This document shows, piece by piece, positions 11,719 to 50,308 of a stretch of DNA of 64,000 bases. Every line of letters begins with the position of its first letter. The first letter of the stretch is position 1. Made by a program: the position numbers and the translations under genes. The DNA comes from Polymyxa betae A26-41 (lineage: Eukaryota > Protista > Endomyxa: Phytomyxea). The notes under the pieces are model-generated. The model saw only the letters and a list, made by a program, of their open reading frames with translations. It was not told the origin of the DNA and made no database searches. The stretch spans positions 103,725 through 167,724 of the forward strand of contig RBZT01000500.1 of the NCBI GenBank assembly GCA_003693705.1. The letters run 5' to 3'.

Positions 11719-11741
11719 TGACTCATACTGAGTTTGAGTCA
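11719..11741. promoter_or_regulatory. Two TGA(C/G)TCA (AP-1/GCN4-type) sites upstream of the CAP gene
   Basis: TGACTCA 11719-11725 and TGAGTCA 11735-11741, about 100-125 bp before ATG 11617. Confidence 0.6.
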
Positions 11742-11892
11742 TTGGTCGAGAGGTGACTATGTTGGCTGCTCTGGACACTCGAAATGGTCGGAAAATTTCA
11801 GTTAACATTTAGCATTAATTGTCAGCGCTGGTGTCACATCAATTGCATTCTAGCAATGCAGTATCGGAAAAGGAGTCCAAAACGTATTTTTA

Positions 11893-14715
11893 TTATACAA
11901 ACGACTCTTTTTTGGCAGCGATCGCCATGATCGATTCCAGCTTGGCAATCTCCTGCTCTTTCTTGATATCTTTAACGGTCTTGGCAGAAATACGGCGTAA
12001 GTTAGGTGATAGCTTCAACGACATAACGCTGCCGCGATCATCACCGACTAATACAATCGGTTCGACCATATTGAAAACTACATGTGTTAATTTTCCCTTT
12101 TTCACGAGCCTTTGCTGTCCAATTGCTTCGTTTTTGTTGACATTGAGATCGAAGAGGAATATCTGGTAGCAATGACAGCAATCAGAGCCAGAACGATTAC
12201 GAGTCCGGTTGAAAGCACCAAACCTTTCCTTCCGAAGTCACGGCAACGAAGACTGTTGAAGAGTACGGCGCCCAAGCAATATCCCCAACAGGCGATCCGA
12301 GATCAAACGTTAGAAGGGGCTCGGAGTTGCTTGATTCCCAGAGACGGACAGTCCAATCTGCCGAACACGACAAGAATACACCCCTATGATATGGGTTCCA
12401 TTTCACAGCATATCTGAGAACCAAATGTTAATAATAAGGTCAGCCTTTCACGGGTTACATACACAGCCATATGGTGACCGGCGAACGTATTTAGGTACTG
12501 AGAATTGTATGCTTTAGAGCAGGTGTGAATGGACCCTAGGTCGTGTTCAGTAGGCTTAGGAGAGAGAGAGGAAAACAAAAAAAACGAGAGGAAACCGAGT
12601 ACTGGAGCAGACCGGAAACAGATTTTAATGATTACCTTCGTCTGTCCCAATGACGAATAAGTGCTCAGCAAATGGATTGAAATCGAAACAGGTTCCACTA
12701 GCTAATCCGCCAATGGCTCTATAAAAACGTCAGCTTTAGCAGTTCCATTACTGAAAACGATTACCTCTCGTCGTCAAAGACCTGGCCAGCCCCTGCCTTC
12801 CTCGAAATCAACTTCAACTGCATGATCTGGTTTATGGATATCAGAAGAATCAATGCGCTTGGGATAAGCAAACAACCTCTTCGTTAATTAGCTCATTCTT
12901 ACTCATTAACCAATCAGTAACTCGCCCGTCCGACGAGATCGAAAAGAAGTTAATCTCTTTGCCGATATCGTCATCGGAATTTTGCCAATAGACGCCCCAA
13001 ACTGGATCAGTATGCTTAACTTTCGGATCTAAGCTCTATTACAAACACAATTGATGCCACCATGTTCAATGAAGGCTTTCCAAGCACCTGGTAAATTGGA
13101 CGGTTCTCTCTCGACCGAATGTCGTAAACGCATACGGATCCATCGTAAAGCCTTACACGAAACTTATACACAGAAAATTTAAAGCATGGTCGTAAGATTT
13201 TACCCGACAGCAAGTAACGCCGGATGTTGCGGGTGGAATGCGATACACACGACACCCGAGGTCGTAGTGAAACTGAATTCAGGATGTGACGGATTCTTCA
13301 GCGTGTAGCAGCAGATCACGCCGCTGCCTTGTTGCGACATGAAATCGTAGGACCCATAAGCAACCGCAAACAGATCCGGATAGTGCATGTTCCATTTGAT
13401 ATCGGTCACAGTCTTACGCTTGGTTTTGGCATACGAGAACTTCCATAGCGCTGAAAACGACCCAACGCCATCGTCGCGCGCCTTATCTTTGTCTAGCTCC
13501 TCTTCCAGATATTTGAAATCGTAAAAGATTTCCTCATCGGCGTTTAGGCTCACAATCCGTTCCATCAGCTTCACAGCTCGCGCCATATTCGGTCCATTCA
13601 TTACCTCATTATAAATTTTAGTTGCAATTGTGATGGTAAGGAGTGAATATTGTACCTTGTGTGAAATATCATCGCGTTTATCAACATCAGCTAATATTAA
13701 GTCATTGACGGGATCACCCTCATTTTCGCTTCGCTGCTTTCGCGTTGTTGTCTTTGATCACTTCTCAATAGTCGAAAGTGACACAGAAAATGCAAAAGTC
13801 ACCTGATCTTTCTGAGCTTTGGCTTCTTTTCCTTCACGGAATGCAGCCAGGTAGGCATCGAATAGAATATATTGAGTGCACAGGCCGTTCAAAGATGCTG
13901 TAGGTGGCGGTTCGGTTGCCACCATTCGATCCCTATCCATGTTTCAGGGTTTGGATATATTTCTACAAGTGATCGACCTGGAAGGATTGTTGAAAGTTTG
14001 CGAAGCTCGCTCTGAGAAGTTGAACTGATTCTTCAAAGCTTTCGATCTCTGAGTGTTAGGGCTATCAGGAGGCACTGGAGCAGCTTGTTGAATTGCCGTC
14101 AAAGGCGCCCCTTCTTCTTCCGCCTTGGTCTAATAAATTGCTCATTAATTATCATAACAAAAGGCGTCGCAAATCAATTACCTCTGAATTTGCATCGGGA
14201 GCCGCTGCACCACCATTTTCATGGCCCTAATTGATCAGCGTTGAGCTCATAATTCTTCAAAAATAACATGAGTTACAGGTGCTGCGGGAGATGGTAAGGA
14301 TTCGGAAGTCTCTTCCGATTGCTGATGGGTCGGATTGCCAACATAGTTTAGGTTATCGTCCATGGAAAACAGCACATTGATATGGTCGGTTGGGGGCATT
14401 GGCTGAAACTGGCCTGAAGCGAAATCGAAGAGAATCAGATTAGCGGGCGCTTGGGGATTGTTTGCGTTCAGAGCTTTGGTGAACTCTTCGTTGAGTTGCT
14501 CCTCAGTGAGGCCTTTGATTTGGTCGTCAGAAACCATATGCACCTCGATAGGTTCGAGATCTGCCACTTCGGACATGGCGTCTTCCTCGACTGGAATATC
14601 CTCATCTTTACGTGGCTGATGAGAACGATCAGCATCGAGGTGACAGATTCTTTCAACCGACCTTCTCTACTTTCTCTTTTTTTTTCGCTTTTGGGGCTGG
14701 AGAAGTGGCTACCAT
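11893..14715 (-). CDS. DNAI1: Axonemal outer-arm dynein intermediate chain (DNAI1/IC1-like, WD40), multi-exon
   Basis: [83 protein letters not shown]. Confidence 0.93.
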
Positions 14716-15028
14716 GATTGAAACCAAAAAAAAATATATGTCAGCGGCCGTCATAGAGCCATGATCTATTTCAGGTACCCAATGCATGCTGTCAGCGATT
14801 TCCATGAAATCAGGTCCTGTATATAGAGCGTTCTGATGTAGATTGCGGTTGAGGAGGCGAGCTTGACATAAGAATTATACAGCTATATCTGTGTGCGGTT
14901 GGTTTATTGCAGATACCATACTGGACTGGAGTTGACAATATAAAACAAAAATTCAACAAAGTAAATAGTTGGAGCAAAATGATTTGTACGTAGAAAGCTA
15001 CAGCGGGATCTGGTCTGGCCACGACCAA

Positions 15029-15094
15029 GCTTGTTTCACTTACCTGAGCAAACGGCGCTGTGCTTGTTTCACTTACCTGAGCAAACGGCGCTGT
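15029..15094. repeat. Perfect 33-bp tandem duplication
   Basis: gcttgtttcacttacctgagcaaacggcgctgt twice, in the DNAI1/POLRMT divergent spacer. Confidence 0.95.
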
Positions 15095-15352
15095 CACTTC
15101 TTGCTACAGGAAGTTCATAGACGCTTCCAGATTCGGCCGAATGCCATCACAGTCACCTTGAAATGAAGTTTTGATTCCAGATCATTCTATCGACAGAGCG
15201 TTCTGTAAATGGGCATGGGCCTTGCAGGCTGGATGGAATGAGAGGAGCCACTTCGAACGTAACATTAACCCCAAATCGAGGTCCCGCAGATGTAACGTAA
15301 TTCCCCAAACCGTGACTCTAATGCGTGATCCCTCTGATCTGCCATCAGAGTC

Positions 15353-27952: not shown

Positions 27953-29575
27953 ATGCGCGTCTGGGTCTGTTGCGGGAGCGGCCGGACGGTGTCGATCGTG
28001 CCGGGCGGTGCTGGCCCACGGGCCACGGATTTCGGTGTCTCGAATGGGATCCTGGATATGTCCAACCTGGATCTGGATAAAGTCCCGGAACGGGTAGCGA
28101 CCGTCAGATCGCCGCGCGCCGTCGTAAGTTGCTTGCTGCTGCGACGAGATTCTGCACAGCCGTCGTTGCCTTCCCTTACTGGCATGTTTATTGGAGATTT
28201 TTGGCATTTTTTTTTGTTCTGTACCCGAGGAGGTTTGATGGTTGCAGTTTCCGATCGCTGTGTTGACGTAATATGACAGATGGTGCTTAAGCTGCAGGGT
28301 AACCGACTACAGTCACTGACACACATCAATCAGTTCAAATCATTACTACGTATCAATGTCTCATATAATGAACTGGCGGGATTCGCAGAGCTAATTGGCG
28401 ATCTGATCGAGTTCGTGCGTCTCACCGATCTGGTCGCTCATCATAATCGTATTGGAAGTATTGGACATGATATAGCCAGGCTTGTAAAACTCGAGGTTAT
28501 GGACTTCAGCTGGAACGCATTAACCGAGGTCGTACTGGCTCCCGAGGGGGGGGGGCAAATCTACATGGTCGATACTAACTCTAACACAGGTGGACGCGGC
28601 CGTCTCATCCTTGCATCAATTACGTATCCTGAATCTGTCTAATAACAAACTGGTATCAATATGCAGTTTGCAAGAGTTACCGAAACTCGAACAGCTCGAT
28701 CTGTCGTTCAATGTCAGTTTGGAGTTAGGGTTAGGGTTTAGGGCTCTAGGGTTTCTCATTCCCTGCTGCACAGAGCCTACGCTCGCTGCCTTTGGATTTT
28801 CTGCGCGGCTGTGGAGCCGTAACCCGCGTTGTGCTGGCCCATAACAACCTGGTCACGATCCCGGACGGGATCTGCGGCCTCGGGTCCGTACAGGCTCTCG
28901 ATCTGGGCTACAACGCGCTGGGAGGCGTCCCCGAACGGATCGGCGAAATGCGTCTGGTCCAGCTCGACCTGCAGCGCAACCGGATCGGTGCTGTACCGGC
29001 CCGCAAGATGATCCGCATGCAGACGCTGCGGGTTCTGAATATGAGCCATAATCTCATCTATCTGCCAGGCAATCTGCGTGCCGTCACGGACTCCGCCCCG
29101 ATCCTCGCATATCTCGTCGACCAGGATGAACAACATCGCCGAACAGGTACAGAACAGTAACAGTATGCGTGCTGACGACTGAATCGTTGTGTGGCAGCCA
29201 GCGGTTCGGTTATGTCACGTCGTCATTCGATAAGTGAGTTCCGTACGGATAATGTAGAGCAGTCCACGGTGTCCGAGGATGTCGCCGGAGATATGCCAGC
29301 AGATGATCATGATGATCGTGATGATGATGACGACGATGATCGCACATCGTCCTCACTATCGACCAAGTCCCAGCGGTTACAGCGTAATTTCTCCTTCGAA
29401 CAGAAGATCCGATTCGTGAAGGTCATCGCGTTCGTACTGCATTGCTGCCGTCACTGAATTGAATCGTCAGGGACGGGATCGGTCGGCGCACCTGCAGGCC
29501 GTACTGGAGCACGACGTGGTTGGGGTGATTCCAGGACCCCAGCAGCGTGGTTCAGGCTGGGAATCTCCTATTTGA
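27953..29575 (+). CDS. Leucine-rich repeat protein, multi-exon (ends approximate)
   Basis: Many LxxLxLxxN units (LKLQGNRL, LRILNLSNNKL, LDLGYNAL, LDLQRNRI, LNMSHNLI), followed by an acidic tail. Confidence 0.8.
28725..28754. repeat. Interstitial telomere-like repeat in an LRR-gene intron
   Basis: ttagggttagggtttagggctctagggttt. Confidence 0.75.
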
Positions 29576-29687
29576 TGATAGCTGGAGTATAATATATAAT
29601 ACTAGCAAGGATATTGGCATGGCATTTGTATTGAGTTTGGGGATGAGAGGAGCGGTCATGGGGTCACACCCCATCGTGATGATGGTC

Positions 29688-30419
29688 CTAGTCATCATCG
29701 TCATAATCTTCATCGTCGTGATCGTCTCTGTGATGATGCGTGGAATCCAGCTCACCATGACCCTGCGAGGGTGGTTAGGGTTTAGGACTTCGCAACCACT
29801 ATTTCCGCTTACGTCGTCATGATCGTGTTCGTCATGCGAATGGTGCTCGGCCTCATGATTTTCACTGTGAGCATGGCTCTCCGAGTTCTGATCGTTACCA
29901 GTCACTGCATTCATGAAATTTAACAACACGTGACAACACTTTGAAACAAAGAGAAACCCAATTTCTCGCAATGAACATGGTTAGACCCAATCAGGGCCAT
30001 ATGGATGGAAAGGATGTACCTTGGGCATTGATTTGGGCATTGGTAGTCACAATAACTTTATCCTTAGCAGTACCTTCTTTTTCGTGCCTTCCATCATCCT
30101 ATATATGGTTCAGTAATTAGAGTTAGTCGGGTTAAAGGGAGAGACACCGACCCGATGATATTCGTCGTCATGATCAGCTTCATGTGAATCATGATGATCC
30201 AGATTACTCGGGAAATGGTGATGGCCATGACCATGATGATGGTGATCGTGGTCGCCTTCCTCGTCATCATCGTCCTCTTCGTCCCCGTGATGTCCGAAAT
30301 GGCCTGAAACGATTGAATTGGCGTGAAGGGCGCTCTCAATGAATGGTACCGTAACTCCATGCAGAAGCGCCTAATATTAGAAGTGAAAATATTAAAGCGA
30401 TTGATGTCGTCCTATTCAT
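29688..30419 (-). CDS. Secreted His/Asp-rich protein HRP-1 (~155 aa, 5 exons)
   Basis: Exons 30419-30350, 30303-30152, 30098-30020, 29904-29813, 29762-29688 join in frame via GT-AG introns: MNRTTSIALIFSLLILGASA-WSYGHFGHHGDEEDDDDEEGDHDHHHHGHGHHH...KDKVIVTTNAQINAQVTGNDQNSESHAH...DYDDDD*. Confidence 0.85.
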
Positions 30420-30533
30420 GATACTGATACCGGGTCCTTTAGCCCGGACAAAGATCCAGTAAATTATAGGTTCGCCGTGCAATAAATTACAAAAATGGCG
30501 ATGAGAACAATCATGAACCGACCGATTCATAGT

Positions 30534-30554
30534 TGAGTCATATTGGATGAGTCC
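30534..30554. promoter_or_regulatory. TGAGTCA site plus TGAGTCC variant upstream of HRP-1
   Basis: TGAGTCA 30534-30540, 115 bp from ATG 30419. Confidence 0.6.
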
Positions 30555-33573: not shown

Positions 33574-33605
33574 TGAGTCAACAGCATTAAGATCATCTTG
33601 ACTCA
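33574..33605. promoter_or_regulatory. Two TGA(C/G)TCA sites upstream of HRP-2
   Basis: TGAGTCA 33574-33580, TGACTCA 33599-33605; ATG at 33631. Confidence 0.55.
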
Positions 33606-33630
33606 GCCAAAACCTCGTCTACGTTGAACT

Positions 33631-34336
33631 ATGTCAATTCGCGTTCTTTACTTGACTGTCGCTCTTGGTATCCTACTTGGTCTGCCAAGCGCTGATGCCA
33701 AGCGCAGATTTCATCCAGACAGTGATGAAGATATGTTCTCAATGAAGGAACATACCGTAAGACCTGAATCGTAGTCACACTGAGCAAAGCATGACATAAT
33801 CCCAGCGACATGATGAAGACGATGATGATGATGATCATTTCGGTCATGGTATCGACCCAAAAGGCTGGGATGGTTGGGGAGAAGCTGATGACGTATGCTG
33901 AGCGATGCCTATTGGCATTCATCAACCATGTTGATAATGCTGTTTAGATGCTACATCAGCGACACCTGAAGCATCTCCATGACAGAGGTCATAACAAACA
34001 TCACGATGATGATGACGACGACGACCATCATAAAAACGATTGGGTAGTAGTAGCGTTTCTGAATTGAAACGATATGCTAAATAAGACGTTTTCAAGTTAC
34101 GTTGGGGAGAGGAAGATGAGCGTGATGATAAGGACCATAATCACCATCATGATCACGGCGAGGTTGGTTCTAAGTTGTGTTCCAACCGGTGATCTAAAAA
34201 AATGATACAGTTCGAAACACCGTTTGATGACGAACACGGTCATCACGGCGATCATCATCACGACAATAAACATCATCACGACGATAAACCTCATCACAAG
34301 CATGGGCATGGGCATGGGCACGGCCACCGCCATTAA
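33631..34336 (+). CDS. Secreted His/Asp-rich protein HRP-2 (~166 aa, 5 exons)
   Basis: Exons 33631-33756, 33806-33892, 33948-34043, 34097-34162, 34211-34336, all GT-AG phase 0: MSIRVLYLTVALGILLGLPSADA-KRRFHPD...FETPFDDEHGHHGDHHHDNKHHHDDKPHHKHGHGHGHGHRH*. Confidence 0.85.
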
Positions 34337-35438: not shown

Positions 35439-36098
35439 GCTAAATGGCGAGTTCGAGTCAGGAGGGGCACTGGATCGCCGGGCTGCGTCTCCAGTCAGAT
35501 TACCACCAAGTGGACAATTTTCGCCTGTCGGTGACTGATCGGTCGATGGGGCTGCGCCTGGCCAGGAATTTCTTTCTCGAAAGTTCGAGTTGCTGGGGGG
35601 ATCTGGGGCGCCTATATCNNGGGGGGGGGGTTGGCGATGAGAGACGATGATCAGCACTTCGACCATTCGTCAAATCTATCGTCGACCGACACGTGTCAAG
35701 TCGTTCAACGATCGACACGTGCAGCGCGCTGATTGATTTCGTTTGATTTCACTCTCACTCCCGACCATCTTTCTGGGGTTTTGATCATACCTTAGTGAAG
35801 GTGACGCATTGCAATGCTATCTTAATGTGATTCTGCTTCGACACCGGATCTCTCTTTCTCAACTGGTTTTTACTCTTGTCTTCCCTTGAATTGTTATTTA
35901 TAAGCTTATAGCACGGTAGTCAGCGGTAAAGCTGACGTATCGAATAACAAAGGCAATGTTATCCTTGTTGGAGAGCTGCTGACAAAACTTCTACATAGCG
36001 ATTCAACGCTTTGTTCTCTATTCGGTGATCGTTCACCCGTTATTTGCTTTACACAGCTTTATCGCAGAGCGAGGATGGAGTCACCGAAATTCCGATTT

Positions 36099-36155
36099 TG
36101 ACTCATTTGGTTCTGCCGATGTCCTCCGACTATATGAGTCACGTGTTCTGAGTCA
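36099..36155. promoter_or_regulatory. Three TGA(C/G)TCA sites upstream of HRP-3
   Basis: 36099-36105, 36135-36141, 36149-36155; ATG at 36265. Confidence 0.7.
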
Positions 36156-36264
36156 ATTACGGTCGGTGCTGAATCGCTGATTCAGGCGAAATTCGTCATT
36201 CTTATATTTCCACTCGATCGAAAGGCATATTATCGTCAAGTTTTCATATCGACGCCTATAAACC

Positions 36265-36879
36265 ATGAAGATCTTACCTATCTTGACGTTGGTTTTGATC
36301 GTCGTCTCGCTGGTACAAGCTCAGCGGCATGACGCGTGGAATCGCGCCCAAGGAACCCGAGCGCAGATCGCCAACCATCACGATGAGCATGTAAACGCCA
36401 ATAACAAGGATAAAGGCGAAAACATCATGCAGCACAAGGGCAAAGATAACACCGATGTTGAAACGGCTGCTTCTTTGACTGCCACCGTGACGGCTACCGA
36501 TGAACACAGCGACCAATACTCGCACCACATGGACAATTCTCACGAGTTATCGCATGCTGACGAACAGCTGCGGTTGATCGAAGCAGCCAGTGCTCACCAG
36601 AACATGGAGCACGATGAAGACGAAGCCGCTGAACATTTCGATGATGACCATCACCACGGCCACCACGAGCCTCTGGATGGTACTCATGGAGGGCACCACG
36701 ACCACCATGATCATCACCAAGGCGGCCTCCACGAAGTTGATCACCACCCCGAAGAGTTCAACCGGTTCGAGTTCCACGAACCTCATGATGACCGCCACGG
36801 ACACGATGGTATGCATGGTCACGATGGTTTTCATGGCCACGACGGTATTCATGGTCACGATGATCATCACTTTCATTAA
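36265..36879 (+). CDS. Secreted His-rich protein HRP-3 (204 aa, intronless)
   Basis: Signal peptide MKILPILTLVLIVVSLVQA; central KDNTDVETAASLTATVTATDEHS motif; C-terminal HGHDG(M/F/I) repeats. Confidence 0.9.
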   Translation: MKILPILTLVLIVVSLVQAQRHDAWNRAQGTRAQIANHHDEHVNANNKDKGENIMQHKGKDNTDVETAASLTATVTATDEHSDQYSHHMDNSHELSHADEQLRLIEAASAHQNMEHDEDEAAEHFDDDHHHGHHEPLDGTHGGHHDHHDHHQGGLHEVDHHPEEFNRFEFHEPHDDRHGHDGMHGHDGFHGHDGIHGHDDHHFH

Positions 36880-38685
36880 ACTAAACGATCCTGCCCGAGG
36901 TTTTTCGGACACCGATTCCTTTTATGATAAACCGATCTAATTTCCTCTCATATCGTTCCATTTGTTTTGTCTTTGCAATTCCGCGTGAAATCACTGAAAT
37001 TCACTGAGACCGATTTAGTTTCATTAAGACATGCATGCGGCAGAAATTCAAAACGGCAGCTCAGCAATGAATTAGGCTAGGTGCACGAGAGCCCCATGAC
37101 CGATCTCTGCACTTTGCTAACCAAACAGTTTTTAACAGGACCCTTGGCATGATCGTACTCATATCGGAACCGTTATAGAACATTATGCTGTTGACCAGCG
37201 AGATTTGCATTTCAACTTTTCGAATGGGTTGGAAGCACTGGACAGCAAAAGAAGCCATATAATCTCCTAGCATTCCAGTCGAAAGGTTTGCCCTACGCCA
37301 AGTACACTGAAAGATTGGGCGTGTCGTCGAAGTAGCCATTCGAGGCCTGAAGAACCATTACGCCCTCAAGCGACAACATGAATGAGATCCACAAAGCCTC
37401 ATAGTGCTGTGTATCAAGAGGCCGCTCCCACCTATTCTGCTTCCAGTTTGACGATTGATTTCTCATTCGATTTGTGTGTTTGTGACCTATTAGGCCTCAT
37501 ACACGATCTTTGCGGAAATGACAAGCCATTGAGAATCTGTTGCCGGCATCGTGTTTATCTGCTTAAGCTGCTCACAGTTGGGGATTTTGTGTGCAGTGCG
37601 GTTACATGGATTACACAAGCATTGGGTCTTCTGATCAATGCCGTTTCGCACCTGCCAGCGTTGACTCGATGCAAAGTTGCAGGATCTCATCGTGTGCTGG
37701 CCATCTTGCAGTATCTGGTAAATGCCGTGAAGTTGCTTAGAAGTTTAAACCAATACCTTTAGTATTGCCAAAACGTTTTGATGGTTTTGAATTGTACAAT
37801 ATTCATTGCCGACTATTTATATGTTTATTTCTACCTAGTCAGGTTAATACATTGATCATCAGATTTTAAGACTAATGGCGTCTAATCTGTGATTCTGGTT
37901 TACAGAATCATTTTGAAATGCAATAGGCAGGCGGATAATCCCAGAATTTTTGAGAAAGAGCACTGTGCTGTCTATTCTATATCGCCTTCGCTGCTCAGTT
38001 GGATTGCTTTCCGGCTTGCCTGGGATCCAGAATGCTCGAGTTCACGACTTGTGAATGTAGCATTCTCTCTGGTCGATGCATAGCTTGCTACGATAAAGAG
38101 AAAATATCGAAAACCTAACAAGATGCTACATCATTAAAAGCTCTCTCTTTCAACTGATCAAACAGAAGCCCCAAAGCGATGTCAATTGTCAACCAAGCGA
38201 AGCGAAACGAACAATATGTTTTTTTGACAAAGTTGTTCATTTCAACAATCTCGTTTGGTGCTATCTTTTCTCAATTGACTAAACGATTCCAGATTTGGAT
38301 CATAAAAGCGCTAGTAATCTGATGCTATCGAAAGTGTATTCTGGCAACGCCGGCTGGCATGATTATTCGGGCAGGCGAGAATGCATTGCAGTCCGAGCTG
38401 TATTTGCTTCTAATTAAGATGCATATTATTGTGCTCGAAAGTCCCTGGTGGAAAACGCTTACTCAGAAACTCGCTACTTCTTCTCGATGTTGATTAACAG
38501 ATTGATTAGATAGACTGTAATTTGCAAGCAATATTACAGTCAATTTATCAGCGGATATACAATTATATTAAGAAGGTTAGAACACTCGCTGATGTGTTCA
38601 AGTTCTTAGCTATGCCTAAGAATCTTTGCAGAAGCGTGTTCAGTGGAAGCACAGACCCTGAACAGCTTCCAAAATTGACAAAGGG

Positions 38686-39387
38686 TCAGGCCGATTGGCT
38701 CTGGAGGATTGTCGGGCGAAACCTTTTCTGGCCGCTGAATGGGATATTGTGGTTATCCTCGGTTGGTTTGGTAAGAAGCGATGAGGGTGATTGCGACTTC
38801 ATCTCCGATTCCCTCCTTTGGGTTTTATGGACCTTAACGAATCCACCATGCATCACATTCTCATCGTCGGCTAAGTTCTTTGCAGTTTGTTTCATTTCCT
38901 CGACGGAGGCTTGAAGTTTGGCGTTTTCCTCTTCGAGTTCCTTGATCCTCTGTTCGAGTTCCTGAATGTGACGTCTCTGGGCTGAGCCCTTTTCATCGGT
39001 TTTACGAACGATCAGCGGCAGCATGTTTGGGTGACCTCTGATGAAGTATGGATGACGGAACTCAACCTGGGTCGCCGAGATTGTGGTCTTGGAGAACCCA
39101 TAGAAATGCATCTGACGAACGAAGCTGCTGAAGTTCGAAGTGTTGAAGTACAGGTGCAGCAGCTCGGACTCGAGCCGGTTTGAATCATAGACGATGAACT
39201 TATCTCCCTCGGGGTTCCAACCGATGATATCTTCTTGTCCTGATTCGACAAGCTTGTAGATTTTCTGCACGAAAGTTGGCGTTTCCATGACGAATTTGTA
39301 ATTCTGCAGCGCATCGGTTGCCATGGATGGACTTATCGGTGATGAAGGTGACCTTTCGGGTAATAGGCTTTCTGAGTGATAACCCAT
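38686..39387 (-). CDS. HSF-type transcription factor, paralogue A (intronless)
   Basis: FVQKIYKLVE..IIGWN..GDKFIV..YFNTSNFSSFVRQMHFYGFSK..EFRHPYFIRG; heptad coiled coil follows; start codon uncertain. Confidence 0.92.
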   Translation of the reverse strand: MGYHSESLLPERSPSSPISPSMATDALQNYKFVMETPTFVQKIYKLVESGQEDIIGWNPEGDKFIVYDSNRLESELLHLYFNTSNFSSFVRQMHFYGFSKTTISATQVEFRHPYFIRGHPNMLPLIVRKTDEKGSAQRRHIQELEQRIKELEEENAKLQASVEEMKQTAKNLADDENVMHGGFVKVHKTQRRESEMKSQSPSSLLTKPTEDNHNIPFSGQKRFRPTILQSQSA

Positions 39388-40058
39388 AGCTGCTGATGAC
39401 TTTGAACTCTTCAAATCTGGACCCGTTATTAAACGGAAAACGAACATGGAGTAAAAGGACCAAGCCAGTAAGGCGCGCCTCTCAGAGCCCGAATTAGGCG
39501 CGCAGAAGATGAGCAACAACGGTGACTAGCGCGGATCATCAATAGCTGATGAGCTTGACTAGGGCATGAGCCCATATAATGGCCGACTCATCCCTGCACT
39601 AAAGCATCGATCTCGACTGTCTTGGCTCATTTTCCACAGGATATGCTGCTATCAGTTGCTAAAAAGTATATTCAGTTTTAAATCATGGTATCAATTACAT
39701 AATCATCGACTCAGATAAGTCAGATAATTGCTGCATTCGTCTACGATGTCGAAAGGGGCAGATTTGCGTCGACTGGCGGCAGTTGTGATCATAATGTTCA
39801 GTCAATATTGTTAGAGTATTGGCCCCAACTTACGCGACGTATCGCATATGAAGCGGAACAAGGACCGCTTAGGGGGCAATGACATTCCTGCTCGCTAATT
39901 CATGACGGGGGTTCTCTGTCCCTTGAACCATTTTGCATTTATAACGTTCTACCCATTAGTTAAGACAACAGATGTGGAATTACATTGAAACTTTAGTAAA
40001 TAATTGCACGTAAACTCGACATTGATACACTGGTCCTAGACGTATCTCGCGATACCAA

Positions 40059-40664
40059 TCAGTTATATTCGTCCTTCTTCTTTCCGTATTCATCATACTT
40101 CTCCTCCTTGCACTCTGAGGTCTTGCACTCTTTAGGCTTACATTCGCTAGTCTTGTTGCATTTGTCATATTCTTTGCCGTAATCGTCCTTGGAGTACTCA
40201 TCGCCATACTTCTTATCTTTGGAGTACTCCTCGCCATACTTCTTGTCTTTGGAGTAATCGTCATACTTCTTGTCTTTGTACTCCTCGCCGTACTTCTTGT
40301 CTTTGGAGTAATCGTCATACTTCTTGTCTTTGTACTCCTCGTCATACTTCTTGTCTTTGTACTCCTCGCCATACTTCTTGTCTTTGTACTCATCGCCATA
40401 CTTCTTATCTTCGGAGTACTCACCGCCATACTTCTTGTCTTTGGAGTATTCTTCTCCGTAGTTTTCAGGATACGCCTTTTCTTCGTCTTTATAAGGCTGG
40501 CACTTGTACTATAGACAAATATTGAGACGATAGATTTGCAGAGAGCTCTGACTTACATCTTTCTCACAATCAGAGGGTGGTCCACAACAATCTTTTTTCT
40601 TGCCACCATGGGCAGCAACGAAGGCCACCAAGACAGCTGCGAGGATAAAGGATAGCTTCATCAT
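40059..40664 (-). CDS. Secreted Tyr/Lys/acidic tandem-repeat protein with Cys-rich ends (~185 aa, 2 exons)
   Basis: Exons 40664-40557 and 40508-40059 (48-nt gtaagt..tag intron): MMKLSFILAAVLVAFVAA-HGGKKKDCCGPPSDCEKDYKC..(Y[GD][ED]EY(S)KDKK)~10..KCNKTSECKPKECKTSEC..DEYN*. The ORF track shows the wrong frame. Confidence 0.9.
40180..40460 (-). repeat. Coding tandem repeat, 27-30 bp, about 10 copies
   Basis: TATGGCGAGGAGTAC(TCC)AAAGACAAGAAG units. Confidence 0.92.
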
Positions 40665-41328
40665 GCTCAGATAACGCTCTTGAAGTTGATGTTGAACGAA
40701 TCAAATCAAAACCAGAATGATGTTAAGCCTAAGGCGGTGACACGCTTTAAATACCTTTCTTAGTACAGAGGATCTCATTGAACCGAGCCACGTGGCCGAC
40801 CAGCGCACGTTACGTTCCACAAGGCAACCGCGTCTTTGACAATCTCTTCGACTGAAGAGCCAGTGGAGACGCGCCCACTGGCGTGCGCGTCAGCATTTGC
40901 CGCACTATGCGCGTGTCCATGCCCAACTGGGAAAGTGCAGAGAGATTTGGTACCTTCCACTCAGGAATCTGTTGGTCTGGAAGTTATCTCCAACTGGAAC
41001 ACTAGTGGCGTCGCCGCCGTCGCGACATGCTGCAGTGAGGCCAGGCCATCGATGACGAGATGCTGTTACGCAATACTACACTCGCCACCATCTTTTGATA
41101 TGCTATTGACTGTCTCTCATTCTTACTCATCCTCTCTCTAAGAAGCAGTTGCCAGTCATGCCAGCATTTATCAAGTCAAGCATTTGCAATCGTCAGCGAG
41201 AGATGCACTGGATAGCCACACAGTTCTGGGTGCTCGGAATGGTCCACTGAGCTGGAAATGGATTGCTCGGATCAAAGGCAAGCACATAGGTACGATTGAG
41301 AAATCCCCAGATTGTGTTCTTCCAAATA

Positions 41329-41335
41329 TGAGTCA
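41329..41335. promoter_or_regulatory. TGAGTCA site upstream of HRP-4, in the divergent spacer shared with the Tyr/Lys gene
   Basis: aatatgagtcaac, 150 bp before ATG 41485; TATAAAA near 41418. Confidence 0.55.
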
Positions 41336-41484
41336 ACGGCGAACCAGAACTGGTCGGATTTTCATGCCAGTTGCGTCACCATGTTAACCGATTTTAAATG
41401 ATGGTTTTCATTTCTTCTATAAAATAACAGGAGTTCAACACGACGATTATCCTATCAAAACGACGTCGATTACCGCTCCGACCG

Positions 41485-42444
41485 ATGTCTGGCACAGTAC
41501 CGCTTTTCTTGCTGGTGCTGTTGCTGCTGACATCGGGGGTGAACGTCGCCTCCGCCGAACGATTTATCTATCCGCCGTCACATAACAACGAAGCAGTAGC
41601 TGTGGACCCAATTCTGGTCGCACAGCCGTATGAGGTTGTCCCCCATGGACCTCTTAGTATGAGCGTCGCATATAATGTGCCTCCTCAACATCATCACCAT
41701 AACGAAGTATATGATGGTGTAGTTTATAGACCATCCGCACACGAGGGAGATTTGCCTCCTAATCAGCACCATCATGTTGTTTCTACTCGAGTCGATGAAT
41801 ATGGGCGACCGGTTCCACCTCCTACGGCTAAGCCGGTTGATCCCGATCCGCCTTCATATCTAGATCATCCACAGGCTCATGAAATGGAGACAAGACCAAG
41901 AGCGCATGCAGTTGACCATGCAGGTCAAGCAGCGACTGAGGAAACTGAACCAGTATATGACGATGAACCATTTCTACACAGAGCTTTAGACAAGAGTCAG
42001 GCTTCGACGGATGTTACTAATGCTCTCGATCATGACCTAGGTGAACTGAATGTCAAAGAATCTGGAGACGATTTAACAGTCCATGTCGGCAAGAACAAAG
42101 TTAAGACTGAAACTGTCGCCACGATTACAGCCACGATCACAGCCACCGACGAGCATGAAGATTCTTACATCAATATTCATCGTAATGCTCATGAAGCATC
42201 CGCTGGTCACGAACACGATCATCTCGATGGAAAGACAGTGTATCTTGATGGTGCTAAGCACGACGCTCTGGACCAGCAAGGTGGCGCCGAAGTCGTACCG
42301 GCTGAGACTCCGCCTCCAGATCTGAGCTTCTTGCAAGATGTCGAGGTGCTGAAGGTCCTGTTTCCATGGTTGGAGAAGCACTCAAATGGGCAAGAGCCGG
42401 AACAGTCGCCCCCAGAAACATTGGACCATGTAGCACTGGCGTAA
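41485..42444 (+). CDS. Secreted His/Pro/acidic protein HRP-4 (319 aa, intronless)
   Basis: Signal peptide MSGTVPLFLLVLLLLTSGVNVASA; PPxQHHHH repeats; GKNKVKTETVATITATITATDEHE motif. Confidence 0.88.
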   Translation: MSGTVPLFLLVLLLLTSGVNVASAERFIYPPSHNNEAVAVDPILVAQPYEVVPHGPLSMSVAYNVPPQHHHHNEVYDGVVYRPSAHEGDLPPNQHHHVVSTRVDEYGRPVPPPTAKPVDPDPPSYLDHPQAHEMETRPRAHAVDHAGQAATEETEPVYDDEPFLHRALDKSQASTDVTNALDHDLGELNVKESGDDLTVHVGKNKVKTETVATITATITATDEHEDSYINIHRNAHEASAGHEHDHLDGKTVYLDGAKHDALDQQGGAEVVPAETPPPDLSFLQDVEVLKVLFPWLEKHSNGQEPEQSPPETLDHVALA

Positions 42445-43310
42445 AACAAGAAAAGCCAAAGTTAACTACCTGAACAGTGGCTTCGTTGTCCAATCAAATA
42501 CCTATATCCCTCAGTTTCTTAATGTACTTAGTAATTCCCTTCAAATTTATCTTTGGGATTCGTGTCGTTGTCGTAGATTTTGATGCAGATCCTCACACAG
42601 GAAATTCGAGATGGATCTAAAATTATTCCGCAATAGTACTATATTTCATCGAAAACGAAGATTTATAGACTGCCTTCTCAAGTTCGATCCTAACGCTGCT
42701 CGGATATTGATTAACACAATCGATACCGAACTTGAATAAAAAGAAAATAAAAAACTCGGTCAGTTGAAGCAAAATAAGAGTGCCGTCCGATGAATAAAAT
42801 GATACTCAGGATGGAACATAGAAGCTTCGTCAGCTCGAGCCATTGATGATCTGTTTTAGAAAAGGAAAGCTCTTCTGAAAGTGTGATACCACTGAATTTT
42901 CGGCCTTGTCAATAGGAATCTAATAGGAATACTTCTCTATACTTTAAAGCTTTTTTCTACTTTAAAGTTTGGAAAGAACAAAAATTTTTTTGCTCGAAGC
43001 AAAACCCTCATCATGTATTTCATGTTTGTTTAATAGCAGAAAAGACAATCCGAACATTTGATAACAGCTTACATTGAATCTCAGCCGGGCAAGATCGCTT
43101 GCAGAATAATACAGTATGAATATTAGAACTTTCAACCTGAGACCAGAGGCCTTGCTCCAAAGGTAGAAATAATCTGAAGCATGGCATAGATAGGAGTCCG
43201 AAACGGTCCAGCTGAAAGCGAGCGCCTTCCCTTGTAAAGAAGGTGCATGGCTCTATAATCGGCTGGTCTGAATTTCTATAGTGCATGATCTTGAATCATG
43301 GAGTTTGAAT

Positions 43311-44009
43311 CTAATTGCTCTGGACGATGGTGGGACGGAACCGTTTCTGGCCATTGAATGGTATGTTGGACGAGATCTCATCCGGGATTGCCGTAAGCTG
43401 ACAGGATAGACGGGGCATCGGCCGATTCACAGCTTGAGGTCTGGGTCTATAGCAAACGAATCCAGACGCTTCGACTTTGTCTTGGACTGCAACGCTTTGA
43501 TTAACAGAAACTCTGGAAATCGTAGCACGAAGTTGGGCGTTCTCTTGCTCGAGTACTTGGATTCTTTCTTCTAATTCCATAATGTGGCGCTTCTGGGCAG
43601 AACCCGTCTCGTTTGTTTTGCGGACGATCAATGGCAGCATATTGGGGCGACCTCGAATAAAGCATGGGTGTCGGAACTCAACCCGAGTAGCAGATGATGT
43701 TGTCTTAGAAAACCGATAGAAATGCAGTTGTCGAATGAAACTGCTGAAATTCGAATGATTGAAATACAGCGGCAGCAGCTCTTTCTGCAGGCGATTGGAA
43801 TCATAAACGATGAACTTATCACCATCAGGACCCCAGCCGATAACATCGTTGTCCGATTCGACCAACTTGTAGACTTTCTGGACGAACATCGGCGTCTCCA
43901 TGACAAGCTGGTAATTCTCCAGGATTTCTGTCGGTATTGAAGGGCGGAATGGAAAAGAGCGATGCTTTTCTGCAAATGACCGGGCGGAGCAGCTGCTCAG
44001 GTGAGTCAT
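43311..44009 (-). CDS. HSF-type transcription factor, paralogue B (intronless; start uncertain, ORF open to 44231)
   Basis: FVQKVYKLVE..YFNHSNFSSFIRQLHFYRFSK..EFRHPCFIRG; coiled coil; C-terminal GQKRFRPTIVQS. Confidence 0.9.
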   Translation of the reverse strand: MTHLSSCSARSFAEKHRSFPFRPSIPTEILENYQLVMETPMFVQKVYKLVESDNDVIGWGPDGDKFIVYDSNRLQKELLPLYFNHSNFSSFIRQLHFYRFSKTTSSATRVEFRHPCFIRGRPNMLPLIVRKTNETGSAQKRHIMELEERIQVLEQENAQLRATISRVSVNQSVAVQDKVEASGFVCYRPRPQAVNRPMPRLSCQLTAIPDEISSNIPFNGQKRFRPTIVQSN

Positions 44010-45453
44010 TGGCATACAAGAGTTCCGGTCTTGGCAGCCAACAGATAGCATCATGATCCTAAACAAGGTGCCGATTCTACCAATCACAGGCGCCTTTCTC
44101 GCCAAGATGGTCTGGCGGAGCCGGCGCAATTTAGAGCGCAATGAGATCTCTGACTTTGTAAATAAATTAGGGCTGGATGTCATATATGGACTGCTGATAA
44201 CAGCCGACCCGAAACAATAGGGCGCTGACACATATATGGTTTTTGTTACTTCCTTGTCAAGGTGTCATGCCGATATCAGCTAGCCATTCGATGGGAAGCT
44301 TAAGTGACTACCGTTTAAACATAAGCGAATAAAAGTTATCACCAATGCCTTGACGTAGAATTATACCTGGGATACTTAGGTTTGTGTAACAATCGAAATC
44401 GACTCGCTTCAGAAGCAAGGCGGACTGGATTAATTGTAGAATGGGTTAATGGGATTGGCTGGACATGGGCAACTCGGTTTCTCTCGTTTCTGAGTCTAGG
44501 GTTTCAGGGTTTGAGGGGCTTGAGGGGTGCGGCCTGTGCTGCGCGGCTGCCCCTTCCCGATGCAGCCCGTTAAATTGACACTTTCCAGCCACCTCAGTGG
44601 ACATGGTCATAATAACAACATTCGTCTCTAGAAGCAGGCGGTGACGTTTTAAACTTGCTGTAGCCGCATGCGCCAGGCATCGATTTAAAGTGCAGCCGAC
44701 TCCCTGCTCCAGAATGACAATCTAAACCTAAAGCTTCAATGGCGACCAGTGTAATTGACGCCGGCTGGACATGAGCGGCCAGATTTTGCTCGTAAGCTGT
44801 TCAGGTGGAAGAAGCTATATCTTAAGCGATTATCTTCGGCGTCACAAGGTGTTGCCTATTAAACGAATCGTTAGGCTTGACATGGTATAATCAGATAGCA
44901 CCGTTTGTTGGTGATGTGAAAGTCCCTATAAATCTTACGTTCATTTCCAGTTAAGGTTACTAGGAAAAGCAGCCATTCCATCTCCAGTTTGAAACTTCGC
45001 CATTCCTACTTCTGTGTAGATCGTTCGATTTCATAGCTGGAGCGATGCCCTGCCTAACAATAAGGAGATTCCACAGCTTCGTGCTCATAGCTACCAGAAT
45101 TCTCGTGACATCCATGAACAAATGATGTCTTATAGGCAGCATTCGCCGGCTTGTGATGGGGAGGGGGTATTGAATTTCCAAGCTGATATCGCGAATCCGG
45201 TCGCTGTTGTTCGTAGACAACGTCAGTCTCCAACAACATCATTGATCAACGTTGAATCTGTAATGGCTAGTTTTTGTTTACAGTGCTGAGCTCGCATTCA
45301 GGTCTGACTATTCAAAACAATTTGTTCGTTACGCTTTTGTTCGTGAAGTTTAAAACGATCGGATTATTGGCTGGATATCTGACGCGATGCATAATCTATA
45401 GGTCTTCCTCAAGGCAATCTATTGGTTGGCTTGATGGAGAAACTTATTAGCTG

Positions 45454-46200
45454 ATGACCTCTTTGGGATGCGATGATTTTCACTGTTTCATTGGATTGAT
45501 CTCAAAGCGACATTCGCTTAGCCCAAATGAGTCACCGCCGCATTCGGCTCACTTCCGAAAGATGCATCCTACTTTGAATGCATTCGAGAACTACCAGGTC
45601 GTCATGGAGACCCCTATTTTCGTCCAGAAATTGTTTAAACTTGTGGAATCCGGTGAGGACATTATCGGTTGGAGGCCGAATGGCGATACGTTTATTGTTC
45701 ATGATTCCGATCGATTGCAAAATGAGCTGCTCCCATTATACTTCAAGCTTTCGAAGTTCAACAGCTTTGTTCGTCAGCTGCATTTCTATGGATTCTCCAA
45801 AACGACACTGTCGAGTTCTCTGATCGAATTCAGTCACCCGTTCTTCATCAAAAATCGTCCAGATATGTTAGCCTTGATTGTTCGGAAAACGAACGAGAAT
45901 GGCAATGCTCAAAAGCGCCATATTCAAGAGCTAAACGAAAGGATACAAAAGCTTGAACAAGAAAATGCCCTACTTCGTGCAAGAGTCGACGTGCTGTCTA
46001 AAACTTCCCGACCACTCGCTGACCAAGCGAAACCTGTTTTAAAACCCTGCAATAGTAGTTCACCTAAGTCTCAGGTGAGTATGAGTGACCAGTCGTCAGC
46101 CTTCTCAGCTTTGCTTTTGGCGCTACCGGGACAAAATCTGGCCAACAGCGCGTTCAAAGCTCAAAAACGGTTTCGTTCATTGGTCGTCCAAAGCCATTGA
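45454..46200 (+). CDS. HSF-type transcription factor, paralogue C (intronless; start may be 45562)
   Basis: FVQKLFKLVE..YFKLSKFNSFVRQLHFYGFSK..EFSHPFF; coiled coil; AQKRFRSLVVQS. Confidence 0.9.
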   Translation: MTSLGCDDFHCFIGLISKRHSLSPNESPPHSAHFRKMHPTLNAFENYQVVMETPIFVQKLFKLVESGEDIIGWRPNGDTFIVHDSDRLQNELLPLYFKLSKFNSFVRQLHFYGFSKTTLSSSLIEFSHPFFIKNRPDMLALIVRKTNENGNAQKRHIQELNERIQKLEQENALLRARVDVLSKTSRPLADQAKPVLKPCNSSSPKSQVSMSDQSSAFSALLLALPGQNLANSAFKAQKRFRSLVVQSH

Positions 46201-46807: not shown

Positions 46808-49511
46808 ATGTCGGCGGCGTCCTGCCTATCAGCCGATCCCGATGCTGATTCCGATGATATTTTCGAAATCGAGGACTATTACACCGCCTCGGATCTTGAA
46901 GGGTTGCTTTTTATTGGTATTTTGCTATCCTTCTGACCCCTTACAGGCTAATCGTTGTGTTCGAAAAACTTCTGAAGGAATGGAGACCGCTTATTCAAGA
47001 CAAAATCGGGCGACGAACGACAATATCTCGCGGCGAAATCTCTGTAGAAGTCGAGATTATCATTCCCGGGACTGCAGAAGCAGACCCTGATCATCCGATT
47101 GCTTTGCTTGAACTTCCAGTTCATATCAGCTTGGTTCCCCATATCACAACCAGCGTTGGAAGCGAGGCCAGATATGTGCTTTCAGCCGCCTGTATTGCTG
47201 CGTATTCGGTTGGTATCGACGTCCCGTTTATCGCTCCTTGCGACGAGTCACTGTGGACTGGGCGATCCTTAACGTCTCGCCATCAGGTCTTTCAACCGAC
47301 TCTTGTCATTTTCACGTCATTTGACAAATGTATCAGGTGGAAGTTACGGAATGGGATATTCCTGAGCGATTGACGAACCTTTCTGGAATATTATCGTTAT
47401 TTTATGATCTAACTGAGCGGTCGCCGCCAAAACAGCTTCCAACGATTACTGTTGAGTACGCCTACGACTACGACCAGTTCGATATCGATGGTATGGTGTC
47501 CCAAAATCTTCGTACGAATAAGAGCTTGGCCGGTTCCGCCTTGGAATGGGGCTGTAGAGAGAAGCAACGTTTGGTAATGCATCTGTTGGCTCGCTGGAGC
47601 CCCTTCCCTGAAGGAACGTTCACAAGTAGCAGTACCCTCACCGATCTAAACCCTGAAGCTGCTCCGATTTGGAAATTACATTGTCATCTAGGTTAGATCT
47701 TGTATTTGTTTTTTAATTTAAAAATAATGAGTTTCCTTTAAGATTTACATTTAACTGCTGTAAAATGTTGTGTCTTTTCTTATGAGAAACTTTAGCACCT
47801 GGCTCTAAATTTCGTCTCGTCTCCAATGTGAAACGGTTCTTATCGACATGTTCCGCCCTTTCCGATTACTCGACCCTGGAAGCTATCACACGACGCGACC
47901 ACACTTTTGCTCCATCTTTTATGATTCAAGAACAAATTCGTGATGTATTCCGCAGCCATGATTCGGTGCTTTATAGCACTCCTAGAACTAATTCTCCCAC
48001 CAATTCCTGCCCGTTCCAATCATTATTGTCCAGTCTGGTTTTGGCAATGATGCAACAATCTCCTCATGAACCTTACAGAATTGCTCAGCTCTTTGTCGCA
48101 TTTGTTGCCGAACTGCAACGTTATTGGGATGAGGGTCTGTATTCATCATATAATCACCTGAATATGGCTAATAATGCCTTAGGCCACCCGCTTCCCGGGC
48201 TATTAAGTGATATAGAAGCGGCGACTCCCGATCTGAATTGCTGCCTGCTTCATCAAAAGCTGCAAGTTCTGAATCAATGCATCCAGCTACGAACGGTTGC
48301 AGTCGATCGCGGCGCCCAGTTGATATCTCCCGTTGTTGAGCGAGCTAAGCATTGGGCTGATTATGACTATGACGATTTTGAAGATGGCCTTGAAGAATCC
48401 GATCAAGCTACCAACACTGCTAGCAATGCAGAGCAATCGCAGGACGCCGAGCCTGAAGGGATTAATTACGATATCACATTACCAGACGTCTATCTACTCA
48501 ACGGGAAGGCGAAAATGCATGTTCCAATAACATTGGAATCTCCATTACTAACTGAAGATGAGGTAATGAGCATTGTGCTATCGGGTCTTCAAACTATCAA
48601 TTTTGTGATCAGATTCAAGAGCAGCATGAGATTTTAGCAGGTCTTGGGACAGATCATGCATCAAGTACAGTTCGTGCCGAGCTGCAATCGTCATCGCTGC
48701 TTTCAGATATGTCGGCTTTCAAAGCCGCCAATCCCGGGGCAGAGATTGGCGATTTTGTGCGATGGTCAGTTTACATTGATTTCTGCAGAATTCTCACGAG
48801 TTGGTGCAGGTATAGTCCAAATGATTGGATAGATGGAAAAGGTCTTTCCAAACGAATGTCGGGCAGCGATAATCTCTGGAAACGCTGCTGGGCCCGAGCA
48901 GCACCATGTCCCGCTTCACGACAAACGCCATTATTCGATTATGTGGCTCAGGGAGAGCGCATCCTCGATTATTTCAGGACCATCACACCATCAGCGCTAA
49001 TGGAGCAAATCTCTGTTATTGCCATCGTCAATGCAGCATCGGTTATTGCCAGGGCGTTTCCTAATGTGGATGACTTTCCATCTGCCAAAAGCTCTGTCGA
49101 ATCAATGTTCCAGAACGCTAATTACGATGTGATCTTATCTCGAGTATTCGCTCATTCGCATTTCATGATTAACCATTAATCTGGTCATTTTAGATCGAAC
49201 ACGTTGAACAAATCGCAGAGCTTGTAGCAAGATTATCTGGAGGTGTTTTCAAACCATCTGAAATTGATGACATTATCCGCAATGGTACTGCAAATATTGA
49301 ATTCGGGAGAGAACGAGTAATTTCTTTAATGCATGAAAGGGCGAGGTCGCTGGGCTATCCAGATCGTCAGCTTTACATGGTTTCAGCTAAAGACTGCAAC
49401 GATAGCACTTTATATATTGCTGTGCAATTAGATGGCGGGACTCTGATAACAGTTAACGATCGATCTGTGCCATCGCAGATGATTTTCTGCTCAACTTTGC
49501 CCGTTAATTAG
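46808..49511 (+). CDS. RAB3GAP1: Rab3 GTPase-activating protein catalytic subunit, multi-exon
   Basis: FEIEDYYTASDLE; PDLNCCLLHQKLQVLNQCI; LLSDMSAFKAANPG..DFVRWYSPNDW..LSKRM..W..RQTPLFD. Confidence 0.92.
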
Positions 49512-50281
49512 TCGTTACTCAAATTTCTGGTTGAGTCCTTCGCAATCTTTATCAAGGTTTCGAGTCAATGAGCCTTAATAACCTCAGCTGCTCCTACCTC
49601 CATATACAGTAAATTGTCTTAATGCCACGCCAATATCAGAGTTTTCCAACAAGGGTTTATTTTGCAGTTAATCTATTATTCTGCTAATCGCGCCTTGGTC
49701 ACTATGTCTATGGGAACCGAAGAGGTGCTGCTTTGATTAACATCGATCATTGATTGGTGATTGTGATCGTTGCTTATTTCTCAATCGAGCGACCTGTTGC
49801 CTGTTTTGAGTAAAGCAACGATGCAAGCGTTTTGATGCAGAACAGAGAGAGTTAAACAGCTACAAAGGATTCGATGTTTGTTAAACTGAAACTCAGTTGA
49901 ATACACCTCGATGAAATACTGTATTGCTTAGCTGCGTTGCGGTTGCCTCGCTAATTGCCAAACACAACATTTTGGCCTCAAACCTTAGGAATACACGCTT
50001 GAGCAATGTTTACCAATGCAACGATGTAGAGTTTTAAAGCAAGAAGCTATCGCGAATATTTGATCGACAGCATGTTCGATTCCAACAACTTTCATGTTGG
50101 CCCAACTCTATCCTTCATCCTATCTTGTCTGTAATCGCTCACATCTCCCCAGGAATATATAACTATCAAATGAGAACATTTTATGAGACCATTTACATGC
50201 GACGGGAGCAGCGTCAGCTTTACAAACAGCTTTCGTTGATTGCTCCTTTTGACAAGGAATGAATCATCATCTACACCTCGA

Positions 50282-50308
50282 TGACTCATTTGTTCGAGTC
50301 ATGAATCA
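50282..50308. promoter_or_regulatory. TGACTCA site plus two one-mismatch variants upstream of HRP-5
   Basis: atgactcatttgttcgagtcatgaatca; ATG at 50416. Confidence 0.6.

Follow-up and report, generated by a model that had tools for sequence, protein, structure and literature searches.

Whether a short DNA word that recurs just upstream of the secreted-protein genes of one locus is a regulatory element, and whether it marks secreted genes elsewhere in the same genome, is the question raised by a 64,000-nt stretch of Polymyxa betae A26-41, here called the window (positions 103,725 to 167,724 of contig RBZT01000500.1; C479:103725-167724 in our coordinates). P. betae lives as an obligate endoparasite in sugar beet roots and transmits the rhizomania virus. 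The word, TGA(C/G)TCA (TGASTCA), is the classic TPA response element (TRE) of AP-1 and the core of the yeast GCN4 response element (ATGA(C/G)TCAT), both of which are bound by dimers of basic leucine zipper (bZIP) proteins. A first-pass annotation of the window had proposed that one factor co-activates its secreted genes, a distant CAP gene included, through this word. We searched 27,085,814 bp on 1,001 contigs; the P. betae draft is reported as 1,001 contigs and 27,085,946 bp at 45.1% GC (PMC6328671). Our results suggest, with a probability of roughly 70%, that clusters of TGA(C/G)TCA form a cis-regulatory element, probably bound by an AP-1/GCN4-type bZIP factor, that drives a regulon largely of secreted and surface proteins.

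An exact pattern count found 13 TGASTCA sites in the window, starting at 2565, 11719, 11735, 30534, 33574, 33599, 36099, 36135, 36149, 41329, 44002, 45528, and 50282, which is identical in number and coordinates to the list that the annotation had compiled by eye. As a total this is not an enrichment, since dinucleotide shuffles lead one to expect 10.4 sites and 13 or more turn up in 25 of 100 of them; the density of the whole genome (2475 sites in 27.09 Mb, or 1 per 10.9 kb) predicts ~5.8 per window. The non-randomness resides in where the sites are placed, not in how many there are. Ten of the 13 precede the start codons of six signal-peptide genes (CAP and HRP-1 to HRP-5) by 32-166 bp, in agreement with the earlier estimate of ~170 bp. 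When the window's non-overlapping open reading frames (ORFs) of 150 aa or more were compared, a site was present at -200 to 0 in 4 of 4 signal-peptide ORFs vs. 0 of 17 others (Fisher p = 1.7e-4); the annotation had likewise seen none upstream of housekeeping genes. Housekeeping promoters and coding DNA do not carry the motif equally often; an equal frequency there is what the annotation itself had named as refuting a regulon. Every credible secreted gene of the window carries the motif and no motif-free one was found there; the remaining signal-peptide-like ORFs were set aside as antisense artefacts of His-rich genes or internal ATGs. A hand-calculated binomial for ten of 13 sites falling within 6 x 200 bp of 64 kb gives ~1e-15. 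Since this statistic is post hoc, the decisive test must use the genome outside the window.

The hypothesis had been formed on the window, and it was therefore tested on the rest of the genome, with the reversed TGASTCA counted alongside as a control word. Close pairs, TGASTCA-N(1-30)-TGASTCA, occur 95 times vs. 3 for the control word, where ~7 would be expected from the density of single sites, so that homotypic pairs are ~30 times commoner than those of the control word. Pairs at a spacing of 31-60 number 39 vs. 1, and mixed TGAWTCA/TGASTCA pairs 122 vs. 5. About 23 of the 95 close pairs belong to two repeat families, leaving ~59 unique clusters, three of which lie in the window, in the promoters of CAP, HRP-2, and HRP-3. 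For 56 non-window clusters, 2 kb were fetched on either side and ATG-initiated ORFs of at least 60 aa were scored, signal peptides being called by a simple rule for a hydrophobic h-region. As controls we used 802 mock positions in the same fetched loci and the window, together with the motif-free ORFs found there, and Fisher's test was applied to the ORF and cluster comparisons. With a limit of 160 bp, the start of a signal-peptide-like ORF was found downstream of 26 of the 56 clusters, at distances of 18-154 bp, vs. 34 of the 802 mock positions (4%; odds ratio 20, p = 4e-18). When at least five transposon-linked clusters are subtracted, 26 of 51 (51%) precede a signal-peptide gene. Likewise, when ORFs of 150 aa or more were compared across the fetched loci, a signal-peptide-like N-terminus was seen in 16 of 30 that adjoin the motif vs. 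3 of 41 motif-free ones. A looser search admitting ORFs of at least 25 aa, intended for short first exons, was dropped, as it returned 13% false positives and gained at most two loci.

Neighbour-gene classes were read for paired sites (clusters), and the genes concerned belong to unrelated families spread over ~40 different contigs, the distant CAP gene of the window being one of them. The proposed regulon is supported also beyond the window in which it was noticed. Pfam domains encoded downstream of clusters comprise Kazal, PAN, Chitin_bind_1 (CBM18), Lectin_C, and Peptidase_S8, with CAP in the window; the other signal-peptide genes behind clusters encode orphans and further His-rich proteins. 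Two further HRP genes lie 90 kb upstream on the window's own contig (L022), and a second HRP cluster lies on contig C920 (L051, L052). In the HRP module family, which was delimited by protein similarity rather than by the motif, the element is upstream of 4 of 4 members. Non-secreted neighbours of clusters include a chitin synthase, a GT2 enzyme, a syntaxin, a FYVE protein, a membrane methyltransferase, a PPR protein, and a C2H2 zinc-finger gene. Two single loci may be described here. At L008, a small His-rich protein beginning MGACC is encoded on the minus strand with its ORF start 265 bp from a TRE pair, and the first residues suggest N-myristoylation and palmitoylation rather than a signal peptide. 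At L028 (695-1933, minus strand), a TRE pair precedes the gene of a 413-aa signal-peptide protein that is a complete orphan, a search of 1.8 billion representative proteins having given no homolog at E <= 0.001.

To describe the element itself, we assembled 32 secreted-gene promoters. All 66 of their exact sites fall at -25 to -200 from the ATG. Read on the sense strand, 29 of them have C and 37 have G at the centre, which indicates that the element is orientation-free. The base flanking each half-site is A in 59, T in 50, G in 15, and C in 8 cases, i.e., A or T in 109 of 132 half-sites. One-mismatch sites, whose frequency near exact ones had already been remarked on in the window, are 2.6-fold enriched in the 32 promoters (32 vs. 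12.3 expected, P = 2e-6), and TGAWTCA is dominant among them (11 vs. 1.4 expected). The centre-to-centre spacing of close pairs ranges from 8 to ~37 bp without an obvious helical preference. K-mer enrichment over the same promoters yields essentially only the motif and its flanked versions. Since the promoters are otherwise unrelated, and since the families downstream are also unrelated, promoter duplication cannot explain the pattern.

Two further features of these promoters were observed. In many of the 32, the stretch between TRE and ATG contains a T/A-rich block (TTTAA/TTAAT-like), 25-60 bp ahead of the start codon; in HRP-3 it occupies 36199-36211 (plus strand) and abuts the 5' end of an RNA contig at 36213. 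This block may be a core-promoter or initiator element. The word GGTCGG(A)/(T)CCGACC is present in 9 of 32 TRE promoters, often near the TRE (e.g., window 36160-36166, 41352-41358, and 30510-30520). Its enrichment as GGTCGGA is weak (11 vs. 3.8 expected, P ~0.002 uncorrected for multiple testing), we do not claim it as a second motif, and it may be a partner site or noise.

RNA runs containing the window's DNA are root and rhizosphere metatranscriptomes; the informative RNA contigs came from runs X1 and X2, and no reads from P. betae were found in the raw-read runs X20 and X24. HRP-3, an intronless gene for a His-rich secreted protein of 204 aa with a clear signal peptide (ORF 36265-36879, plus strand), is covered by contigs from two independent studies, at 36213-36918 and 36229-36913. 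Its triple cluster (36099-36155; sites starting at 36099, 36135, and 36149, or -166, -130, and -116) ends at 36155, and the sites lie 58-114 bp upstream of the contig's 5' end. Since both contigs begin at least 58 bp past the last site, the HRP-3 sites are promoter DNA, not mRNA. HRP-2 is a spliced gene for a His-rich secreted protein (33631-34336, plus strand; ATG at 33631, stop codon at 34334-34336), the structure of which was read from an RNA contig. Four very short introns of 48-55 nt (33757-33805, 33893-33947, 34043-34095, and 34161-34208), with GT..AG joints, interrupt it; exon translations place the signal peptide on a 126-nt first exon, which ORF-based scanning overlooked, and show the last exon to be His-rich. 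Its promoter pair (33574-33580 and 33599-33605) is at -57 and -32 from the ATG. Contig depth for HRP-3 was the highest in the stretch examined, and both HRP-2 and HRP-3 were assembled from small root metatranscriptomes (one of 19 Mb), whereas the elongin-like genes between them were not. These contigs are consistent with strong in-planta expression, as presence in assemblies and not as a measure of co-expression.

Conservation was seen in one ortholog. For the gene behind the cluster at L040, which encodes a CBM18 protein, an ortholog of 74% amino acid identity was found on L064, a 1.6-kb contig that comes from a different sample. The promoter of this ortholog has TGACTCA at -95 (-98 in P. betae) and CGACTCA at -81 (TGAGTCA at -83 in P. 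betae), and a 20-nt T/A-rich block near -45 is identical in both (L040:1950-1969 region; L064:290-310 region), while the remaining upstream sequence has diverged between P. betae and its relative. These islands were read directly from the sequences; MAFFT alignment mis-registers the two promoters. In Plasmodiophora brassicae, a homolog (P0006; 61% identity over 29% of the query) of the C-type lectin gene at L043 has no TGASTCA. The sole TGACGTCA of its 21-kb locus, the cyclic AMP response element (CRE), lies at -128 of the gene (L061:9873-9880; gene 10001-11197). The CRE of ATF/CREB-type bZIP proteins has the same half-sites as the TRE and differs from it in being an 8-bp site. The regulon may use the CRE form in the GC-rich P. 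brassicae, a lead from a single gene. In P. betae, TGACGTCA is mildly over-represented in the genome (559 vs. 386), and the only copy in the window, at 59482, is far from the secreted-gene promoters. CAP orthologs (P0001 and P0002) also exist in Logan assemblies.

The same clusters occur in retrotransposons. A dispersed repeat of ~228 bp with TG...CA termini, like those of a long terminal repeat (LTR), carries three exact TGASTCA and one TGAATCA and is present in at least 17 copies (L055:1868-2095, which is the end of C32; L056; L060; L054:3180-3410; and ~13 further contig ends). Breaks in the assembly often fall at this repeat, which then stands at the end of a contig. An internal sequence common to two of the copies adjoins them and is missing next to two others, which points to solo LTRs or 3' LTRs. 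At least five clusters counted as unique are transposon-linked: two adjoin Ty3-type capsid/gag ORFs (L012:2366-3115 and L009:1039-1788), one lies in a copia-type gag ORF (L053:1333-2730), one in a chromodomain ORF with a weak integrase C-terminal match (L038:1820-2581), and one is an LTR variant. Several retrotransposon families thus seem to use the same word. AP-1/Gcn4 sites are known from the LTRs of other retroelements, i.e., retroviral enhancers and yeast Ty elements, and the P. betae LTR resembles these in carrying TGASTCA copies, a link drawn from sequence alone.

We propose that the element is TGA(C/G)TCA, or more loosely TGANTCA with A/T flanks, in two to four copies spaced 8-60 bp, and that it would act from 25-200 bp upstream of the ATG and before the transcription start. 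A dimeric bZIP factor would occupy these homotypic TRE clusters, immediately before the core promoter, and would activate a regulon dominated by secreted and cell-surface proteins. We infer such activation, the agency of one factor, and the co-expression of the genes concerned from the placement of the sites. Predicted targets are His-rich secreted proteins, CAP/PR-1, a Kazal inhibitor, PAN, CBM18 chitin-binding, and C-type lectin proteins, a subtilase, and many orphans. Since the regulon seemingly also takes in chitin synthase/GT2 enzymes and syntaxin, the programme may be stage-specific. Candidate factors are present, as the genome contains at least four bZIP_1 matches above the Pfam cut-off (C482:154093, C539:59343, C675:174319, and C19:57587).

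The properties of AP-1/GCN4 sites are well established, and those of P. betae are like them in the identical 7-bp pseudo-palindrome, its use in either orientation, the A/T flanks, the variable centre, and the multiple copies within ~200 bp of the gene start. However, the targets are secreted and surface proteins of a rhizarian plant parasite, unlike the amino acid biosynthesis genes of GCN4 or the growth and stress genes of AP-1. No amino acid biosynthetic enzyme adjoins any of the 56 clusters; therefore, this is not an amino acid regulon of the GCN4 type. Neither endoplasmic reticulum chaperones nor translocon components were found among the cluster neighbours (paired sites), the single machinery-type gene being the syntaxin. 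The genes behind the clusters encode cargo and not chaperones, so that, as judged from paired sites, the regulon is not of the unfolded protein response type governed by Hac1, XBP1, or CREB3-type bZIPs. Shared boxes that mark secretion or effector regulons are known from bacteria (hrp and PIP boxes), and stage-specific promoter motifs have been reported from oomycetes. The logic in P. betae is the same, in that a short promoter word marks many unrelated genes for secreted proteins or effector candidates and can be used for prediction, although the organisms, factors, and motifs differ. Searches of the literature on Polymyxa, plasmodiophorids, and Plasmodiophora brassicae found no plasmodiophorid promoter motif, cis-regulatory element, or regulon, and the word 'promoter' does not occur in the secretome paper that was text-searched. 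The motif itself is textbook; its use as an element of plasmodiophorid secreted genes appears to be new within the literature searched.

Several observations weigh against a bZIP-driven secreted-protein regulon. Lone exact sites are barely more frequent than the control word genome-wide (2475 vs. 2015), so a lone site predicts little; indeed, only 3 of 20 incidental single sites had a signal-peptide-like ORF within 200 bp, one of them convincing. About half of the clusters stand at non-secreted genes (PPR, FYVE, C2H2 zinc-finger, orphans) or LTR retrotransposons. The nearer site of HRP-2 ends 26 bp before the ATG and, the 5' end of its contig being incomplete, could be in the 5' untranslated region. 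In addition, the signal-peptide calls rest on a hydrophobicity heuristic and not on SignalP.

The non-secreted neighbours bear on a different reading of the same clusters, namely that the element serves a stage-specific or stress programme (in planta, in spore-wall formation, or in an AP-1/Yap-like response to oxidants or metals), in which secreted and wall proteins merely dominate. Such a programme would readily accommodate the chitin synthase, GT2 enzyme, syntaxin, FYVE, and C2H2 zinc-finger genes as well as the apparently N-acylated His-rich protein. It would also suit the many His-rich and hence possibly metal-binding targets, and the detection of HRP-2 and HRP-3 in RNA from infected roots. 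However, the enrichment of signal peptides at clusters is very strong, and no stress-type genes, such as those for chaperones or redox enzymes, turned up next to the 56 clusters. We regard this explanation as unlikely to be the better one, although it overlaps with that of a secreted-protein regulon and does not exclude it.

It is considerably less probable that the word is functional and read by a factor outside the bZIP class, possibly from a transcription factor family peculiar to the lineage, its likeness to the AP-1/GCN4 site being coincidental. That just four bZIP_1 matches exceed the cut-off could be taken to favour such a factor. However, all the traits of a bZIP-bound TRE are found together (the 7-bp pseudo-palindrome, degenerate centre, A/T flanks, and orientation independence), and the P. 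brassicae ortholog of one target has, at -128, an 8-bp CRE built of the same half-sites. An artefact, whether by chance, by inheritance of promoters among tandem HRP paralogs, or by seeding from the LTR family with its three motif copies, is very improbable and already largely refuted: the window total does not exceed that of shuffles, the window's six genes include five for His-rich proteins that neighbour one another, and at least 17 clusters genome-wide are copies of one LTR, yet ~55 unique clusters remain without repeats where 3-7 would be expected, they precede unrelated families on ~40 contigs, and their promoters share only the motif and lack the LTR sequence.

The remaining secreted genes of the window conform to the pattern described for HRP-2 and HRP-3. 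The CAP gene (10886-11617, minus strand; ATG at 11617) encodes a CAP/PR-1 family secreted protein of 243 aa with an N-terminal signal peptide (Pfam CAP, E = 8e-14), and its promoter pair consists of TGACTCA at 11719-11725 and TGAGTCA at 11735-11741 (11719-11741; -108 and -124), which is the pair C479:115443-115465 of the genome-wide search. HRP-1 (29552-30419, minus strand; ATG at 30419) encodes a His/Asp-rich secreted protein and was read from frame translations, its 3' end being approximate; the signal peptide is on a short first exon, followed by at least one intron. A single TGAGTCA (30534-30540) stands at -121, with a GGACTCA neighbour at -135. HRP-4 (41485-42444, plus strand), an intronless ORF for a secreted protein of 319 aa with a clear signal peptide and the conserved HRP module (match to the L022 family, E = 1e-9), has a single TGAGTCA (41329-41335) at -156 and a TGCGTCA neighbour at -113. 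HRP-5 (50416-51054, plus strand) is an intronless ORF for a His/Gly/Asp-rich secreted protein of 212 aa with a clear signal peptide. Its cluster (50260-50308) comprises TGACTCA at 50282-50288 (-134), TGAATCA at 50260 and 50302, and CGAGTCA at 50295, and was returned genome-wide as the mixed pairs C479:153984-154012 and C479:154006-154032.

Some of the His-rich proteins have in common a conserved module (~KG.DK..T...LTAT..A.D.H.DSYSH.HDNAHE) that is not repetitive and has no Pfam match. At least four to five members of this family were recognized (window 36265-36879 and 41485-42444; L022:2118-2819 and 3186-4019; L051:2124-2702), and HRP-5 and the proteins of L026, L052, L031, and L045 are plain H/D/G-rich proteins outside it.

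Three of the 13 window sites are isolated. The TGACTCA at 2565-2571, in the region of the DENN gene, is judged to be background. Two sites that the first-pass annotation had placed at the 5' ends of HSF-B and HSF-C both fall within the longest ORFs, close to codons that might serve as alternative starts. The TGAGTCA at 44002-44008 is in the N-terminal part of the HSF-B ORF and overlaps an in-frame ATG, and the TGAGTCA at 45528-45534 is inside the HSF-C ORF, 31 bp before an internal ATG; each is judged background or undecided. These three sites compare with the ~6 per window predicted by the genome background. Since the HSF sites lie within ORFs and the number of isolated sites is within that background, we do not claim that the HSF genes are linked to the element by regulation. 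The HSF genes themselves are three intronless paralogs (50-52% identical) interleaved with HRP genes at window 38686-46200; in each product the DNA-binding domain is followed by a coiled coil, from which weak hits to bZIP and TSC22 zippers arise, and all three have a C-terminal QKRFR motif in common. Two N bases are present at window 35619-35620, in the region of an elongin-A-like gene.

The plasmodiophorids, i.e., Polymyxa (vector of the rhizomania virus), Plasmodiophora (clubroot), and Spongospora, are obligate intracellular parasites without genetics. The title of one paper terms the finding of their effectors 'a challenging goal' (PMC6177251). Clusters of TGASTCA would offer a sequence-only ranking of candidates for effectors and the secretome, among them orphans and genes with short exons that gene callers overlook. 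They would also provide a concrete class of candidate regulators in the at least four bZIP genes, a handle on the timing at which the secretome is switched on, and a clean example from Rhizaria of homotypic site clustering and of LTRs borrowing a regulatory word of the host. A bolder and doubtful extension is that a single bZIP-TRE module governs the plasmodiophorid secretome as its master switch, effector candidates included, having been kept in Polymyxa, taken the CRE variant in P. brassicae, and been hijacked by LTR retrotransposons. If this were true, a promoter scan for TGANTCA pairs would define the secreted repertoire (~100-300 genes) that these unculturable and genetically intractable parasites deploy in planta, and would name its regulator.

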